From Paramoeba atlantica (lineage: Eukaryota > Protista > Discosea), in NCBI GenBank assembly GCA_977017575.1, contig CDRNVI010000190.1, forward strand, positions 62,001 through 126,000: DNA of 64,000 nt, read 5' to 3'. The notes beneath the pieces were generated by a model, which saw nothing but the letters and a program-made list of their open reading frames with translations, was not told the origin of the DNA and did not search any database. This document shows, one piece after another, positions 18,833-24,399 of this stretch; within the stretch, counting starts at the first letter, position 1; the number at the start of each line of letters is the position of its first letter. A program made the position numbers and the translations under genes.

Positions 18833-18882
18833 GAGACTTTTTTGGTGACTCCCCTCTTCTTTTTCTTTGTCTCCAATCGGAA

Positions 18883-19025
18883 TTGATTAAAAGGACAAGA
18901 CTGAAAGAAAGGGGGTGTGTGTGGGAGTTTGGAGCTGCTTGCAATTCGGTAATCTTGCCAAGGGTTGATCAATTTTTTAAAGCAATTTTCAACAAACTCA
19001 TCTCAAACCTGCAAAAAGAGACTGA
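18883..19025 (+). pseudogene. 3' remnant of the small array gene (copy 1)
   Basis: ELIKRTRLKERGCVWEFGA..VDQFFK, then a 1-nt frameshift before HLKPAKRD*. No 5' half. Confidence 0.75.
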
Positions 19026-19292
19026 AAAGCTCATTTTTCCCCAACAAACCAACTCTCTCTTCCTCCTTTTTGAAGAAGCTTTTAATTCTTTCTGTTTTTC
19101 TCTTTCGCGGGAGGACGAAAGTTTTTTTGGCTCTTTTATTTCACCCACCTAACAGAAAACTTTCATTCTTCTTCTTCTCTTTCTTCTTCTCTGTTGTTGG
19201 GTTAAAACTCATTCTTTTGTGTCTCTGTTTGGTTTCTTGTTCTTTACCTTGCCCCTTGAAAGAAAGAGGAAGGACGAAAGAAAAAGGGGACA

Positions 19293-19500
19293 ATGGCAAA
19301 TGTTGATGAAAGAATCAAAACCAAAATTTTTGGTGATTGGTGGTTCAGTAGTAATTTGTGGAAGGTTGAATTGTGAAGGGATTCTTTTCTACCCGGTCAA
19401 TACCCTTTCTGAATTCGGTGATCTCTTTGAAGAAGCAATTGTTTCTTTTGAAAAAGATGTTGAGAGTTTTGGGGGATTGAAGGGTGGTTTTACAACCAAA
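19293..19500 (+). pseudogene. Disrupted array gene (copy 2)
   Basis: ATG GCA AAT GTT GAT GAA, then a 2-nt deletion relative to intact copies, an internal deletion (GRLN joined directly to CEGILF) and 3' truncation after GGLKG. Confidence 0.75.
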
Positions 19501-19764
19501 AAATTGGTTTTCAAAAAGAACGACTTTTTTGGGCTCTTTTTTTCGCCTTCCAAACGAAAGTTTTCTGTTTGTTCTTGTTCTTCTTTTTCTCTTTTCTCTG
19601 TTGTTGTTCTTTTCTATCTCTTTCTCGTTTTACCACTGGTGGTTCAAACTCATTTGTTTGTGTCTCCGTTTGCTCTTTTTCTCTTCTTTTTCTTGCCCCT
19701 TGAAAGTTTGAGAAAACTCAAGTGGAGGACGAAAGAAAGAGGAAGGACGAAAGAAAAAGGGACA

Positions 19765-20205
19765 ATGGCGGATGTCGATGAAAGTGAATCAAAACCAAAA
19801 ATTTTGGTGATTGGTGGTTCGAAATCAGTTTGTGGAAGGTTGAATCAGAAAAAGGGGTTGGGTTTTTTCTTTTTGGATGTGATTTCTGATTTCAGAGATT
19901 GTGAAGGGATTCTTTTCTACCCGCTCAATACCCTTTCTGGAGTAGGATCTCTCTTTGAAGAAGCAATTGTTTCTTTTGAAAAAGATGTTGAGAGTCTTGG
20001 AGGGATTGAAGGGGTGGTTGTGTATATTTGGGCTGATAAACCTGATCGAACGATGAAAGAAGAAATAGTGGAAAGGTTGAGATTGGAAGAAAGAGGATGT
20101 GTTTGGAAGTTTGGAGCTGGGTTTGATTCTGAGATTACTCCAAAGATTGATAAATTCTTTAAAGAGAATTTACAAACGATTGTCAAACCAGCAAAAAGAG
20201 ACTGA
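19765..20205 (+). CDS. Small array protein, degenerate small-GTPase-like fold (copy 3)
   Basis: Intronless MADVDESESKPKILVIGGSK..DFRDCEGILFYP..VVVYIWADKPD..KPAKRD. Family membership is certain; the fold is inferred. Confidence 0.8.
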   Translation: MADVDESESKPKILVIGGSKSVCGRLNQKKGLGFFFLDVISDFRDCEGILFYPLNTLSGVGSLFEEAIVSFEKDVESLGGIEGVVVYIWADKPDRTMKEEIVERLRLEERGCVWKFGAGFDSEITPKIDKFFKENLQTIVKPAKRD

Positions 20206-20445
20206 ATTAAGAACAGAAAACAATTATTTTTTGTAAAATTGAATCTCCAACAAAAACAACAAGAACGACTTTTTTTGGCTCTTTTTTTCACCTCCCGTTC
20301 TTCTTCTTCTCTTTCTTTTTCTCTTTTCTCTGTTGTTGTTGTTCTTTCTATCTCTTTCTTGTTTTACCACTGGTGGTTAAAACTCATTCTTTTGTGTCTC
20401 TGTTTGCTCTTTTTCTTTTTCTTGCCCTTTGAGAAGAAAGAGACA

Positions 20446-20895
20446 ATGGCGGATGCCGATGAATGTGAATCAAAACCAAAAATTTTGGTGATTGGTGGTT
20501 CGAAATTAATTGTTGGAAAGTTGAAGAAGAGAGAGGGATTGAGTTTTGTCTTGACGGATGTGATTTCTGATTTCAGAGGTTGTGAAGGGATTCTTTTCTA
20601 CCCGGTCAAGACCCTTTCTCTAATGCTAGATTTCTTTGAAGAAGCAATTGTTTCTTTTGAAAAAGATGTTGAGAGTTTTGGTGGGATTGAAGGGGTGGTT
20701 GTGTATGTTTCGGTTGATGAACGTGATCGAGGGTTGAAAGAAGAAATAGTGAAAAGGTTGAGATTGAAAGAAAGAGGGTGTGTTTGGGGGTTTGGAGCTG
20801 GGGAGAATGATGAGATTATCCCAAAGATGGATCAATTCTTTAAAGAGAATTTACAAACTGTTGTTCTCAAACCAGCAAAAAGAGATGAAAAATAA
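20446..20895 (+). CDS. Small array protein (copy 4)
   Basis: Full-length paralogue MADADECESKPKILVIGG..KPAKRDEK. Confidence 0.8.
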   Translation: MADADECESKPKILVIGGSKLIVGKLKKREGLSFVLTDVISDFRGCEGILFYPVKTLSLMLDFFEEAIVSFEKDVESFGGIEGVVVYVSVDERDRGLKEEIVKRLRLKERGCVWGFGAGENDEIIPKMDQFFKENLQTVVLKPAKRDEK

Positions 20896-21179
20896 TTTCA
20901 TGAATTAATAATCTAATTTGAATCTCAAGAAGAACGACTTTTTTTGGCTCTTTTTTCACTCGCCCCAAACAGAAACTTTCGTTCTTCTTCTTTTTCTCTT
21001 TTCTATCTCTTTCTCTTTTCTCTGGTGTTGTTACTCTTTCTCTATCTCTTTCTCGTTTTACCACTGGTGGTTAAAACTCATTCTTTTGTGTCTCTGTTTT
21101 TGTTTTTGTTTTTTCTTTTCTTGCCCCTTGAAAAAGAAGAAAGAGTGAACCAAAAGGAGGAGGGCGAAAGAAAGAGGCG

Positions 21180-21620
21180 ATGGCGGATGTTGATGAAAGT
21201 GAATCAAAACCAAAAATTTTGGTGATTGGTGGTTCGAAATCAGTTTGTGGAAGGTTGAATAAGAAAGAGGGGTTGAGTTTTTTCTTTTTGGATGTGATTT
21301 CTGATTTCAAAAATTGTGAAGGGATTCTTTTCTATCCGCCCGAGACCCTTTCTCGAATCGTAGGATCTCTCTTTGAAGCAGTTGTTTCTTTTGAAAAAGA
21401 TGTTGAGAGTCTTGGTGGGATTGAAGGGGTGGTTGTGTATATTTGGGCTGATGAACCTGATCGAACGATGAAAGAAGAAATAGTGGAAAGGTTGAGATTG
21501 GAAGAAAGAGGATGTGTTTGGAAGTTTGGAGCTGGGTCCGATTCAGAGATTATTCCAAAGATTGATAAATTCTTTAATGAGAATTTACAAACGATTGTCA
21601 AACCAGCAAAAAGAGACTGA
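21180..21620 (+). CDS. Small array protein (copy 5)
   Basis: 146 aa paralogue, closest to copy 3. Confidence 0.8.
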   Translation: MADVDESESKPKILVIGGSKSVCGRLNKKEGLSFFFLDVISDFKNCEGILFYPPETLSRIVGSLFEAVVSFEKDVESLGGIEGVVVYIWADEPDRTMKEEIVERLRLEERGCVWKFGAGSDSEIIPKIDKFFNENLQTIVKPAKRD

Positions 21621-21858
21621 ATTAACAACAGAAAACAATAATTTGAATCTCCAACAAAAACAAAAAGAACGACTTTTTGGCTCTTTTTTTCGCCTTCCAA
21701 ACTTTCGTTTCTTCTTCTTCTCTCTTCTTTTTCTCTGTTATTGCTTCAACTCCCAATTTTCTTTTGGGTTTTCTTGGAAGTCCAACACTCAATCTTTGGT
21801 TTTTTCTTCTTCCCTTTTCTCTTCTTTTCCTTGACCTTTTTCAGAAAGGAAAAGAGAC

Positions 21859-22302
21859 ATGGCAGATATCGATGAAAGTGAACCAAAACCAAAAATTTTT
21901 GTGATTGGCGGTTCGAAACGAATCATTCGAAGGTTGAATCAGAGAAAGGGATTGAGTTTTGTCTTTTTGGACGTGATTTCTGATTTCAAAGATTGTGAAG
22001 GGATTCTTTTCTACCCTCGCGATGCCCTTTCTCGAATCGAAGCTGCCTTTGAAGAAGCAATTGTTTCTTTTGAAAAAGATGTTGAGAGTCTTGGTGGGAT
22101 TGAAGGGGTGGTTGTGTATGTTTCGGTTGATGAACGTGATCGAGGGTTGAAAGAAGAAATAGTGAAAAGGTTGAGATTGGAAGAAAGAGGATGTGTTTGG
22201 GGGTTTGGAGCTGGGTCCGATTCTGAGATTATTCCAAAGATGGATCAATTCTTTAAAGAGAATCTCCAAACAATTGTTCTCAAACCAGCAAAAAGAGATT
22301 AA
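21859..22302 (+). CDS. Small array protein (copy 6)
   Basis: 147 aa paralogue; its C-terminal half is closest to copy 4. Confidence 0.8.
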   Translation: MADIDESEPKPKIFVIGGSKRIIRRLNQRKGLSFVFLDVISDFKDCEGILFYPRDALSRIEAAFEEAIVSFEKDVESLGGIEGVVVYVSVDERDRGLKEEIVKRLRLEERGCVWGFGAGSDSEIIPKMDQFFKENLQTIVLKPAKRD

Positions 22303-22357
22303 AACTAAAGAGAAAGATTTTTTTGAATCCAACTGCTTCAGAAAAACAAATTTTATT

Positions 22358-23668
22358 TCAATTTTTGTTTCCTTTTGCACCTTTGACATTAACTCCAGAG
22401 GAACAACCCACATAGAAAAGCTGAGGCCATTCTTCAAATAAATAATTTCTCACTCGCTCTTGCATCTTATCCATCATTTTCAAGAGCTGTTCTTTTTCGA
22501 CAGTTTGTACAAAATCCCCAAAATAATCATGCCCCCAATCCTGAGCTGGAATAGGAGATGGAGGGTTCTCCCAGAGACGAATAAAAGCAACAGTGGCGAC
22601 AAAAATTTCTGAAACGCCATAAAATAACATTCGATCCCAAATAAAAAGAGAAATGGGAATGGGATTAAATTGCCCATCTACAAAGATCAGAAGAACCTTT
22701 CGATGGAGGCTTGAGTCCATAATACTCGAATAATCTTCTAAATCCACCCATTTTTGAAACTTTGGACAAAATTTTGGGATAAGTGATCGCAGGACCGATA
22801 TTATTGAGAAGTCTTCTTCAAAACGAAAAAGGTTTCTTACTCCGAGAGAATGAAGCAATTTTGCGAAAGCAAGGATCATGAAATCTTTTTTTGTTAGTTG
22901 AGAAGATGGAGAAGGAGAAGGAGAAGGGGAGAGAAAAGGAGAAGAAAAAGAAGGAAATGATAGAGGGAGACCTCGAAAGAGATCTCTTGCAAGAAATGGC
23001 AGACAATCTACATAACCAACCTCAGGATCAAAAAAAGCATAACAAACAAAAACCTCTTTCATTATCTCGCTCCATTCTTGGATTTCTCTTCCTGTGAGAC
23101 ATGATCGAGGGATATCTCTCACCGCTTGTTCACCTGACCTCTTCGCTACCTTGAATCTCTTTTTCTCTTCTTCATCTTCCTCTTCTTCTTCTCCTTCATT
23201 CTGTTCTTCTCCTTTTCCCTTTTCTTTTCCCTTTTTCTTTAAAGAAAGAATCTGATATCCATCAATGTCAATCAAAAGAGAGAGATCATCAGGGAGAGGA
23301 GAAGACCAACCACTCGAAATTTGATCTCCAGAAGAGAGAGAACCAAGTAACACAAACCAAAGAAGAGGTCTGACCCAAGAAGGGATTCTTCCTTTTTTCA
23401 CATTTTGTTCAATGAATTGTTTGTGTTGGTGAACAAAAAAATCTGGTGTTTGTATGTTTGTTTCAAGTTCTGAGAATGAGAATGAGTGTGGGATCGATGG
23501 TGATGAACAAGAGGAAGAAGAAGAGGAACAAGAGGAGGAAGACGAAGACGAAGACGAAGACGAAGACGAAGACGAAGAAGACGAGAGAAGATTTGGGAGA
23601 TGTTGTTGAAGGAACTGAAGCCAAATTTTGTCAACATCTTTTGTTTGTTTCTTTTGAAAAAAAGACAT
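22358..23668 (-). CDS. TBC (Rab-GAP) domain protein, unconventional
   Basis: Intronless 436 aa. IPSWVRPLLWFVLLG, AVRDIPRS, YAFFDPEVGYVDCLPFLA and IWDRMLFYG match TBC motifs, but YxQ is replaced by YVD. Confidence 0.85.
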   Translation of the reverse strand: MSFFQKKQTKDVDKIWLQFLQQHLPNLLSSSSSSSSSSSSSSSSSSCSSSSSSCSSPSIPHSFSFSELETNIQTPDFFVHQHKQFIEQNVKKGRIPSWVRPLLWFVLLGSLSSGDQISSGWSSPLPDDLSLLIDIDGYQILSLKKKGKEKGKGEEQNEGEEEEEDEEEKKRFKVAKRSGEQAVRDIPRSCLTGREIQEWSEIMKEVFVCYAFFDPEVGYVDCLPFLARDLFRGLPLSFPSFSSPFLSPSPSPSPSSQLTKKDFMILAFAKLLHSLGVRNLFRFEEDFSIISVLRSLIPKFCPKFQKWVDLEDYSSIMDSSLHRKVLLIFVDGQFNPIPISLFIWDRMLFYGVSEIFVATVAFIRLWENPPSPIPAQDWGHDYFGDFVQTVEKEQLLKMMDKMQERVRNYLFEEWPQLFYVGCSSGVNVKGAKGNKN

Positions 23669-23931
23669 TGTTTCTCCTTCTCCTTCCTCCCTTCCTCTCC
23701 TGATGCTTGTTCAATTCGAAGCAACTGATTCTCTTGTTCTCCCTTCCTCTCCTTTGGCAAAGAAAACAAATTTAGCGTCTTGTTTTTAGAGCTCCAAAAT
23801 AACCTCTCATTTTTCTCTCTTTTTCTCTTTCTCTCACCATTCTGCACCGAAAGGAGAAACCTGTTTCTTCAATTCTTTCTTCAATTCCAAAAACTATCAT
23901 CCCGACACTCTGGAAAATTTTGAAAGAGACA

Positions 23932-24399
23932 ATGGTGGATGTTGACGAGAGTGAATCAAAACCAAAAATTTTGTTGATTGGGGCTCTTGATCCAACTCCT
24001 TGGAGATTAGTTACAGCGTTCAACTGTTCCAAGAGTTCGAGTTTTGTCTATACGGATCTGATTTCTCATTTCAAAGATTGCCAAGGAGTTCTTTTATTCA
24101 CATTGGCTTCCATTTCTCAAAGCGAGGGTCGCTTTGAAACAGCAATGAATTCATTTGAAAAGAGTATTTCAAGTCTTGGTGGGATTGAGGGCACGGCTGT
24201 GTTTCTGCTTGTTTGTGGGAAAGAGGCGGAAGATGAGTTTCTCTTGAAAGAGAAAATGGTGAAAAGATTGAGATTGGAAGAAAGAGGCTGTGTTTGGGGG
24301 TTTGGAGCTGGGTCCGCTCCAACAAAGGTTTTTCCAGAGAGTGATCAATTCTTTCATGATGCACAGCCTAATCTCAAACCAGCAAAGAAAGAAAAATAG
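23932..24399 (+). CDS. Divergent small array protein (copy 7)
   Basis: MVDVDESESKPKILLIG..FKDCQGVLLF..RLRLEERGCVWGFGAG..KPAKKEK. Confidence 0.8.
   Translation: MVDVDESESKPKILLIGALDPTPWRLVTAFNCSKSSSFVYTDLISHFKDCQGVLLFTLASISQSEGRFETAMNSFEKSISSLGGIEGTAVFLLVCGKEAEDEFLLKEKMVKRLRLEERGCVWGFGAGSAPTKVFPESDQFFHDAQPNLKPAKKEK

Follow-up and report, generated by a model that had tools for sequence, protein, structure and literature searches.

To our knowledge, each known pseudoGTPase is a domain that is present in a single copy and has fixed partners, and we know of no class i pseudoGTPase that forms an expanding multigene family. Class i pseudoGTPases, in the sense of Stiegler and Boggon, have a G-like fold from which the G motifs are gone (PMC12490416). 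AAGAB holds its partner via the face opposite the nucleotide pocket (PMC12490416), p190RhoGAP contains the pseudoGTPase domains pG1 and pG2 (PMC5593906), and deletions have removed secondary-structure elements from some microsporidian ArlEM proteins (PMC13393502). These proteins, together with Irc6 and CENP-M, are the nearest precedents for a tandem array of small intronless genes that we analysed in Paramoeba atlantica, in a stretch of 64,000 nucleotides (contig CDRNVI010000190.1, positions 62,001 to 126,000 of the forward strand) that is hereafter called the window.

Each gene of the array codes for a free-standing protein of about 147 residues with a single domain, and the genes belong to a lineage-restricted multigene family. 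A reading made from the sequence alone (the sequence-only reading) had proposed an expanding family of pseudoGTPases that would act as decoys or adaptors, with a flavodoxin-like or other alpha/beta fold as the alternative; the family proved to be real, intronless, tandemly expanding and free of G motifs, and its descent from GTPases is about as likely as not. In contrast to the class i pseudoGTPases, the domain is free-standing, smaller and five-stranded; the family is massively and recently duplicated, with at least 61 tandem matches (to be read as an upper bound per haploid genome, see below), hypervariable loops and a polarised pattern of variation; and its proteins bear a lineage-specific tail that is common to other gene families. 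The face by which AAGAB binds its partner corresponds to the conserved face of this family, and a loss of secondary-structure elements would be a feature that it has in common with some ArlEM proteins.

Structure of the array and size of the family

The paralogues in the window were identified as follows.

19765-20205, + strand: intact paralogue of 146 residues (open reading frame (ORF) and translation; profile E = 1.1e-72)
20446-20895, + strand: intact paralogue of 149 residues (ORF and translation; profile E = 1.3e-71)
21180-21620, + strand: intact paralogue of 146 residues, the window copy that was modelled (ORF)
21859-22302, + strand: intact paralogue of 147 residues (ORF and translation; profile E = 1.7e-74)
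23932-24399, + strand: divergent intact paralogue of 155 residues (ORF and translation; profile E = 2.2e-54)
about 18871-19025, + strand: broken copy 1, the C-terminal third only, with the LKERGCVWEFGA stretch (repeat families D4 and D5; three-frame translation)
about 19293-19500, + strand: broken copy 2, an N-terminal piece (repeat families D2 and D6; translation)

ORFs, repeat finding and three-frame translation thus confirmed the five intact and two broken intronless paralogues, mostly about 0.7 kb apart, of the sequence-only reading. The ORF listing and the repeat finding show a head-to-tail arrangement on the + strand, in which the first four intact copies have start-to-start distances of 681, 734 and 679 nt and the fifth lies about 2.07-2.10 kb beyond the fourth. 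The repeat blocks of the four close paralogues are 79-96% identical at the DNA level, and the fifth copy, at 49% protein identity to the modelled copy, has additional residues inserted in the loops that follow strands 1 and 4. In broken copy 1, a frameshift moves the terminal KPAKRD-stop to a different frame, the profile match covers positions 97-138, and a match to the KPAKRx-stop pattern lies at C190:81005-81025, which is 19005-19025 of the window. Broken copy 2 has an early frameshift near codon 7, and an internal deletion has removed about 20 codons from the part that separates helix 1 from the GILFY strand; its similarity ends past the GG motif, and its profile match is restricted to positions 45-84.

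The search for further copies that the sequence-only reading had suggested yielded far more than the window set. A profile search of the 45.7-Mb assembly gave at least 61 family matches with arrays on seven contigs (C140, C148, C188, C190, C178/C207 and C168), a count that is an upper bound per haploid genome because near-identical matches are paired across contigs. The family occurs at five places on C190, including the window array; C140 has about ten copies at 241.9-248.4 kb and two further copies besides, and C148 has two arrays of about twelve copies apiece. Among the fetched loci there are about 30 distinct intact ORFs of 143-165 residues with unchanged start and stop; several copies outside the window contain stops. 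Subfamilies with as little as 23-40% identity share the same motifs, and in distant members, at 23-35% identity, both length and motifs are unchanged. Many identical or near-identical matches are held by the contig pairs C148/C188, C178/C207, C21/C33 and C44/C66, and the assembly probably contains both haplotypes or duplicated segments.

An exhaustive profile search of 1.84 billion protein representatives returned 32 clusters at E <= 1e-3, all of which were ENA-only, single-member and without name or accession, so that no named homologue was found in this set. A word-based homologue search gave 29 ENA proteins, none of them named, of which 12 correspond to fetched loci of the assembly at 98-100% identity. 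Most of the others are 70-82% identical to the best copy found in the assembly and are located on contigs of different lengths, and at least one related genome therefore probably also carries the family.

Sequence motifs

An alignment of 32 diverse members shows the following features to be invariant or almost invariant. The proteins of the window subfamily start with MAD.DESESKPK. The core contains a hydrophobic ILV strand and the blocks G[IA]L[FY].P, RL+L.ER.C.W and FF.EN, as well as FE..V...GGIEG, which is followed by a hydrophobic strand ending in W[VA]D..D. The terminus reads [LIV]KPAK[RK] plus 0-5 residues, with KPAK invariant in all aligned members except one. Two single residues, Ser41 and Asp94, are also invariant or nearly so. 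The motif order listed in the sequence-only reading was recovered in each intact copy, with each motif set on a predicted element of the AlphaFold model.

None of the aligned members contains a Walker A/P-loop motif GxxxxGK[ST], the DxxG glycine, NKxD, SAK or CAAX. The loop between strand 1 and helix 1 is variable (GGSKS, GGDEY, CDAPQ, LNDIE), lacks a GK[ST] consensus, and is 3 residues long in the model of the window copy. The positions equivalent to G3, G4 and G5 are occupied by LDVISD or variable residues, by W[VA]DxxD, and by FGAG or WDY, respectively. Switch I and the antiparallel beta2 strand are missing; in both structure models, no more than 7-10 residues separate helix 1 from the strand that follows it. 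Alignments and models agree here with the earlier statement that the P-loop GK[ST], switch I/beta2, the DxxG glycine, the NKxD asparagine and a prenylation cysteine are absent. A Pfam search with four window proteins gave nothing relevant to the array proteins. Compared with Arf, Arl and Sar proteins (PF00025), the family is without P-loop, switch I/beta2, DxxG glycine, NKxD and G5, has neither the N-terminal myristoylation glycine nor the amphipathic helix, and is 30-40 residues shorter. By each defining test, the family proteins fail as working small GTPases.

Predicted fold

The window copy 21180-21620 was modelled with AlphaFold2 from a 30-sequence alignment (predicted local distance difference test (pLDDT) 85.4, predicted template modelling score (pTM) 0.82). 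In this model, five strands alternate with five helices and the ends are disordered; the strands span residues 12-17, 35-37, 48-52, 85-90 and 113-118, and a helix spans residues 121-136. A second model, of the distant member P0039 from a 35-sequence alignment, has a pLDDT of 86.0 and the same layout but lacks the short helix that connects strands 2 and 3. The C-terminal tail is disordered in both. The domain is thus predicted to be a five-stranded alpha/beta/alpha sandwich, and the models suggest a sheet of five parallel strands in the order 2-1-3-4-5, as in flavodoxin and CheY.

A Foldseek search of the PDB with the window copy gave 24 matches at E <= 1e-3, nearly all of them to Arf, Arl, Sar and G-alpha proteins, the best at 1.2e-4 with a template modelling (TM) score of 0.63. 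In the structural comparison, Arf/Arl proteins ranked at the top for both models, with a margin for P0039 that does not exceed the tool's own tie limit. The Arf/Arl alignments cover 120-130 residues at 12-19% identity, as compared to 105-118 residues at 6-12% identity for receiver domains. The Foldseek result for P0039 was ambiguous.

Variation and selection on the two faces

Loop classes were set beforehand from DSSP assignments on the model of the window copy. The beta-to-alpha loops are the equivalents of the P-loop, switch II, G4 and G5, and the alpha-to-beta loops lie on the opposite face. Mean column entropy over the 32 sequences is 2.32 bits in the beta-to-alpha loops versus 1.05 bits in the alpha-to-beta loops (permutation p = 5e-5), and over the five window copies it is 1.10 versus 0.38 bits (p = 6.5e-4). 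These values bear out the observation of the sequence-only reading that the differences between paralogues cluster after the strands, on the face that would form a nucleotide pocket.

The ratio of nonsynonymous to synonymous substitution rates (dN/dS), estimated by the Nei-Gojobori method and pooled over 91 pairs of 14 close paralogues, follows the same division, with 1.30 in the beta-to-alpha loops, 0.40 in the alpha-to-beta loops and 0.75 elsewhere. The value of about 1.3 falls short of proof of positive selection. Because one face has a ratio of 0.40 and the other 1.30, the analysis shows the folded protein to be under selection, with constraint on the face that lies opposite the former pocket.

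Sequence comparison with GTPases

The family profile was compared with Arf1, Arl2/3-like, Sar1 and Arl8-like genes from the same genome. In hhalign, it aligned to these Arf/Arl/Sar sequences with a score of 18.9 (P = 0.037, probability 1.4%); when the columns of the Arf alignment were shuffled 200 times, only 3 shuffles scored as high. The alignment places family positions 44-110 on Arf positions 82-147, which comprise beta4, alpha3, beta5/G4 and alpha4. It pairs GILFY with beta4, VVVYIWADEPD with LLVFANKQD, and EIVERLRLEE with EVTERLGLHA, so that NKQD lands on the family's ADEP; this is the register that the sequence-only reading had proposed. Comparison with the second exon of Ras-like genes that form arrays in this genome (see below) gave a score of 17.8 (P = 0.039) in the same register. 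With a hidden Markov model (HMM) of 46 members, each of the Ras/Arf ORFs that were inspected aligned in the same beta4-alpha3-beta5 register, at 1-5 bits. Among the weak profile matches to the PDB, the only one beyond noise was to the G4 strand of EF-Tu, again in that register (E = 1.2).

The hints of GTPase ancestry are mutually consistent, and each of them is insignificant alone. The apparent enrichment of G proteins among the weak HMM matches (11 of the top 25 versus 36 of 346 ORFs) was not used, since the background consists mostly of non-coding ORFs. The nearest protein-language-model neighbours of the window family were CENP-M, at 0.86, and then Ras and Arf, below the level of 0.9 taken as a lead. 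Membership of the CENP-M family was rejected on the lack of a sequence match and on the GAG motif, which in CENP-M is located on a different strand from that of the family. Neither PF11111 (CENP-M) nor PF10199 (AAGAB/Irc6) was matched by 30 members in Pfam at E <= 10, and the family shows no sequence relation to any of the class i precedents. Compared with AAGAB and Irc6, the C-terminal adaptin-binding region is absent, as the family protein stops 10 residues past helix 5.

Possible origin and function

We tentatively favour, at slightly less than an even chance, a class i pseudoGTPase-like scaffold that is derived from a small GTPase and has variable binding loops. The chances that the family descends from GTPases at all are about even. 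The most economical reading of the fold would be an Arf/Ras-type G domain minus the P-loop, switch I/beta2 and the G3-G5 residues. The domain would fit the class i definition in two respects, by its absent motifs and by a predicted G-like fold that is not exclusive to G domains. If it is GTPase-derived, loss of the P-loop would account for a loop of 3 residues between strand 1 and helix 1, as compared to 8 in a small GTPase, and with switch I/beta2 and G3-G5 gone as well it would be expected neither to bind nor to hydrolyse GTP and to act as a class i pseudoGTPase. The domain may then serve as a rigid two-sided scaffold. Its constant side, which comprises the alpha-to-beta face (GGIEG, RLRLEERGCVW) together with an N-terminus that is acidic and a tail, [LIV]KPAKR, that is basic and disordered, would contact a common partner or address, and the four loops of the former pocket, which vary among paralogues, would give each copy a distinct binding specificity. 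New variants would arise through tandem duplication and local copying between copies. If true, evolution would have put the G-domain fold to a new use, as a loop-display scaffold in which the pocket loops have been made into a variable surface; if GTPase ancestry fails, the family is still an unannotated, lineage-restricted and structurally well-predicted multigene family with polarised variation.

A number of results weigh against this reading. No method that was used gave a significant sequence link to any GTPase family: the hhalign probabilities for Arf and Ras were only 1.3-1.4%, sequence and profile searches of the PDB gave nothing better than E = 0.7, a protein-language-model query with a member of subfamily B produced no usable match, and Pfam searches with the 30 members gave no Ras, Arf, Roc or other relevant match even at E <= 10. 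Since beta2 is absent, the topology of five parallel strands coincides with that of flavodoxin and CheY. For P0039, Foldseek returned nothing from the PDB at E <= 1e-3, with flavodoxins and receivers in the lead and Arl2/3 intermixed, and an unbiased structural search ended in a tie between Arf6 (9.6), the wing domain of a decarboxylase (9.4) and the NtrC receiver (9.2); in the structural comparison, receiver domains trail by just 0.6-2 Z units. At 0.75, the whole-gene dN/dS is high. Synonymous divergence (dS) is likewise raised in the variable loops and segments and lower in the conserved blocks, so that part of the pattern may stem from gene conversion or relaxed constraint; it is probably through copying between paralogues that the conserved blocks stay alike.

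Several of these points favour the main rival, a flavodoxin-like or CheY-type receiver-like alpha/beta module that is unrelated to P-loop GTPases and either very divergent or newly arisen. The likeness to Arf would then follow from the common five-stranded, three-layer sandwich, and the protein would still be a non-enzymatic binder with variable loops. We consider this account a real possibility, though somewhat less likely than the favoured reading. It agrees with the five alternating beta/alpha units without an antiparallel strand, with the persistent lack of a significant sequence link to GTPases, and with the P0039 Foldseek list, which is headed by a designed Rossmann 2x3 protein, flavodoxins and the ChxR receiver. 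However, Arf/Arl proteins came first for both models, with longer alignments and higher identity than receivers, and in hhalign three successive elements line up in the GTPase register. Strands 2 and 3 are connected by a helix of 6 residues or by no such element, an arrangement closer to switch II than to the regular helix 2 of CheY. Unlike CheY-like receivers and flavodoxins, the family has no phospho-acceptor pocket or flavin loops, and its second helix is short or missing; strand 1 ends in IGG and strand 3 in FYP, without an acidic pocket, and after strand 5 there is GAG or a variable sequence in place of the conserved lysine of receivers. Neither PF00072 nor PF00258 was matched by the 30 members even at E <= 10. 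The receiver-domain genes of this genome are split by introns, and they gave three partial matches only.

It is improbable that the array consists of decaying or selfish repeat-borne ORFs without a cellular role, the remnants of a single duplicated gene whose copies gene conversion has kept similar. The overall dN/dS, the two broken copies in the window together with the stop-bearing copies elsewhere, the lower dS in the conserved blocks, which gene conversion would be expected to produce, and the absence of a named homologue among the 1.84 billion representatives are in line with such decay. Yet the roughly 30 distinct intact ORFs have a constant length, subfamilies at 23-40% identity still have the same start and stop as well as GGIEG, RLxLxERGCxW and KPAK, the dN/dS differs between the two structural faces, and both structure models are confident. 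The members at 70-82% identity, which appear to come from a related genome, also argue for retention. An enzyme or a binder of small molecules with a non-canonical use of the loop face, such as a TIR-like NADase or a protein that binds nucleotides or flavin, is the least probable of these explanations and would be a great surprise. The near-invariance of Ser41 and Asp94 in the 32 sequences would suit it, but the face that would bind the ligand is the most variable part of the protein and has no conserved catalytic motif, and no TIR or flavodoxin family was matched in Pfam by the 30 members.

A C-terminal tail shared with other gene families

A tail of the form [LIV]K[PAS]AK[RH], located 0-4 residues before the stop, ends at least four unrelated types of domains that are encoded in tandem arrays: the family described here, Ras-like GTPases, ankyrin-repeat proteins and SPRY-like proteins. 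A genome-wide search for the DNA pattern encoding KPAKR gave 182 occurrences, as compared to 49 for a reversed-pattern control, and the pattern with one more codon and a stop was found 31 times versus 0 in the control, about half of the occurrences being outside the arrays of the present family.

The Ras-subfamily arrays are located on C153 (74-86 kb) and C158 (130-134 kb; loci L056-L069), and their genes were compared exon by exon. These are multi-exon genes, with a first exon that encodes MGxxxS, likely a myristoylation site as judged from its sequence, and a normal P-loop. The last exon keeps DTAGQ, NKxD and SAK and ends in CKNIKAAKR, NIKSAKR or NIKAARQ, not in CAAX. Several copies have degenerate switch II/DxxG motifs (DRAGGE, DEPGQE, DKAGGE). 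The two kinds of arrays resemble each other in being tandem, in lacking CAAX, in a tail NIK[AS]AKR that is similar to [LIV]KPAKR, and in an IEG that precedes the beta5 strand (RSIEGIGVLIGNKVD vs. GGIEGVVLYVWVDESD). They differ in that the Ras-like genes encode true GTPases in several exons, with the P-loop exon, DTAGQ, NKxD, SAK and MGxxxS, whereas the present family is intronless.

Arrays of ankyrin-repeat genes on C145 (loci L076-L081), with a period of about 3.5 kb, end in IDGTIKPAKRQ-stop, and the codon string of this tail, identified by DNA pattern, is repeated with similar spacing on C150, C173 and C230. Further tail-bearing arrays are located on C156 and C164. The SPRY-like array on C139 (locus L084), with a period of 1.25 kb, ends in CSVKPAKRG-stop, and a SPRY-like ORF adjoining a Rac gene (L049:650-1087:+) ends in MLKPAKH-stop. 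An array on C87 (L082:1462-1515, + strand, period 3.5-6 kb) contains a short frame ending in IIKPAKR-stop that occurs eight times; these frames sit downstream of Cys/His-rich ORFs that resemble mobile-element proteins.

Because the tail occurs on unrelated folds, including those of the ankyrin and SPRY genes, it provides no evidence for descent of the family from Ras and was discarded as proof of such ancestry. The literature that was searched contained no published description of it. In animals, the SOCS-box families (SPSB, ASB, Rab40) carry a short C-terminal element on SPRY, ankyrin-repeat and GTPase-type domains. By analogy with this one element on several domain types, the tail on SPRY-like, ankyrin, Ras-like and array-family genes may be a short shared docking or address signal; it differs from the SOCS box in comprising 5-6 residues, not 40, and in having no sequence similarity to it. 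Its presence on four unrelated domain families points to a short signal at the C-terminus that has not been described before in the amoebozoans of this lineage. A further step, which we regard as unlikely, would make the tail a lineage-specific tag that links variable recognition domains to one machine or compartment, with the arrays of the present family as a diversifying recognition repertoire. If the tail is such a tag, the family, the N-myristoylated Ras-like proteins and the SPRY and ankyrin arrays would all plug into one common machine; if the arrays are a recognition repertoire, the targets could be intracellular bacteria or effectors that target GTPases.

Neighbouring genes and other observations

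The window as a whole is eukaryote-like, with a G+C content of 31-43%, low-complexity spacers, and genes for WW/FF, SMYD and alpha-2-macroglobulin proteins. The gap of about 2 kb between the fourth and the fifth intact copies is filled by one further gene.

22358-23668, - strand: TBC/RabGAP-domain gene, ORF of 436 residues (Pfam PF00566, E = 2.7e-12)

A TBC paralogue with 75% identity is located at C190:1-1119 (+ strand), about 6 kb from a different array of the family. A functional link between the TBC gene and the arrays was not adopted, its support being just the presence of two TBC paralogues on one contig, one nested in an array and the other about 6 kb off. In the window copy of the TBC gene, the position of the usual YxQ glutamine is apparently occupied by GYVD, as judged by eye.

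At the Arf1 locus (C44, L031:1352-2127), there are three overlapping open frames of more than 200 residues on both strands, which would be in keeping with codons strongly enriched in G+C, in a genome whose overall G+C content is about 37%.

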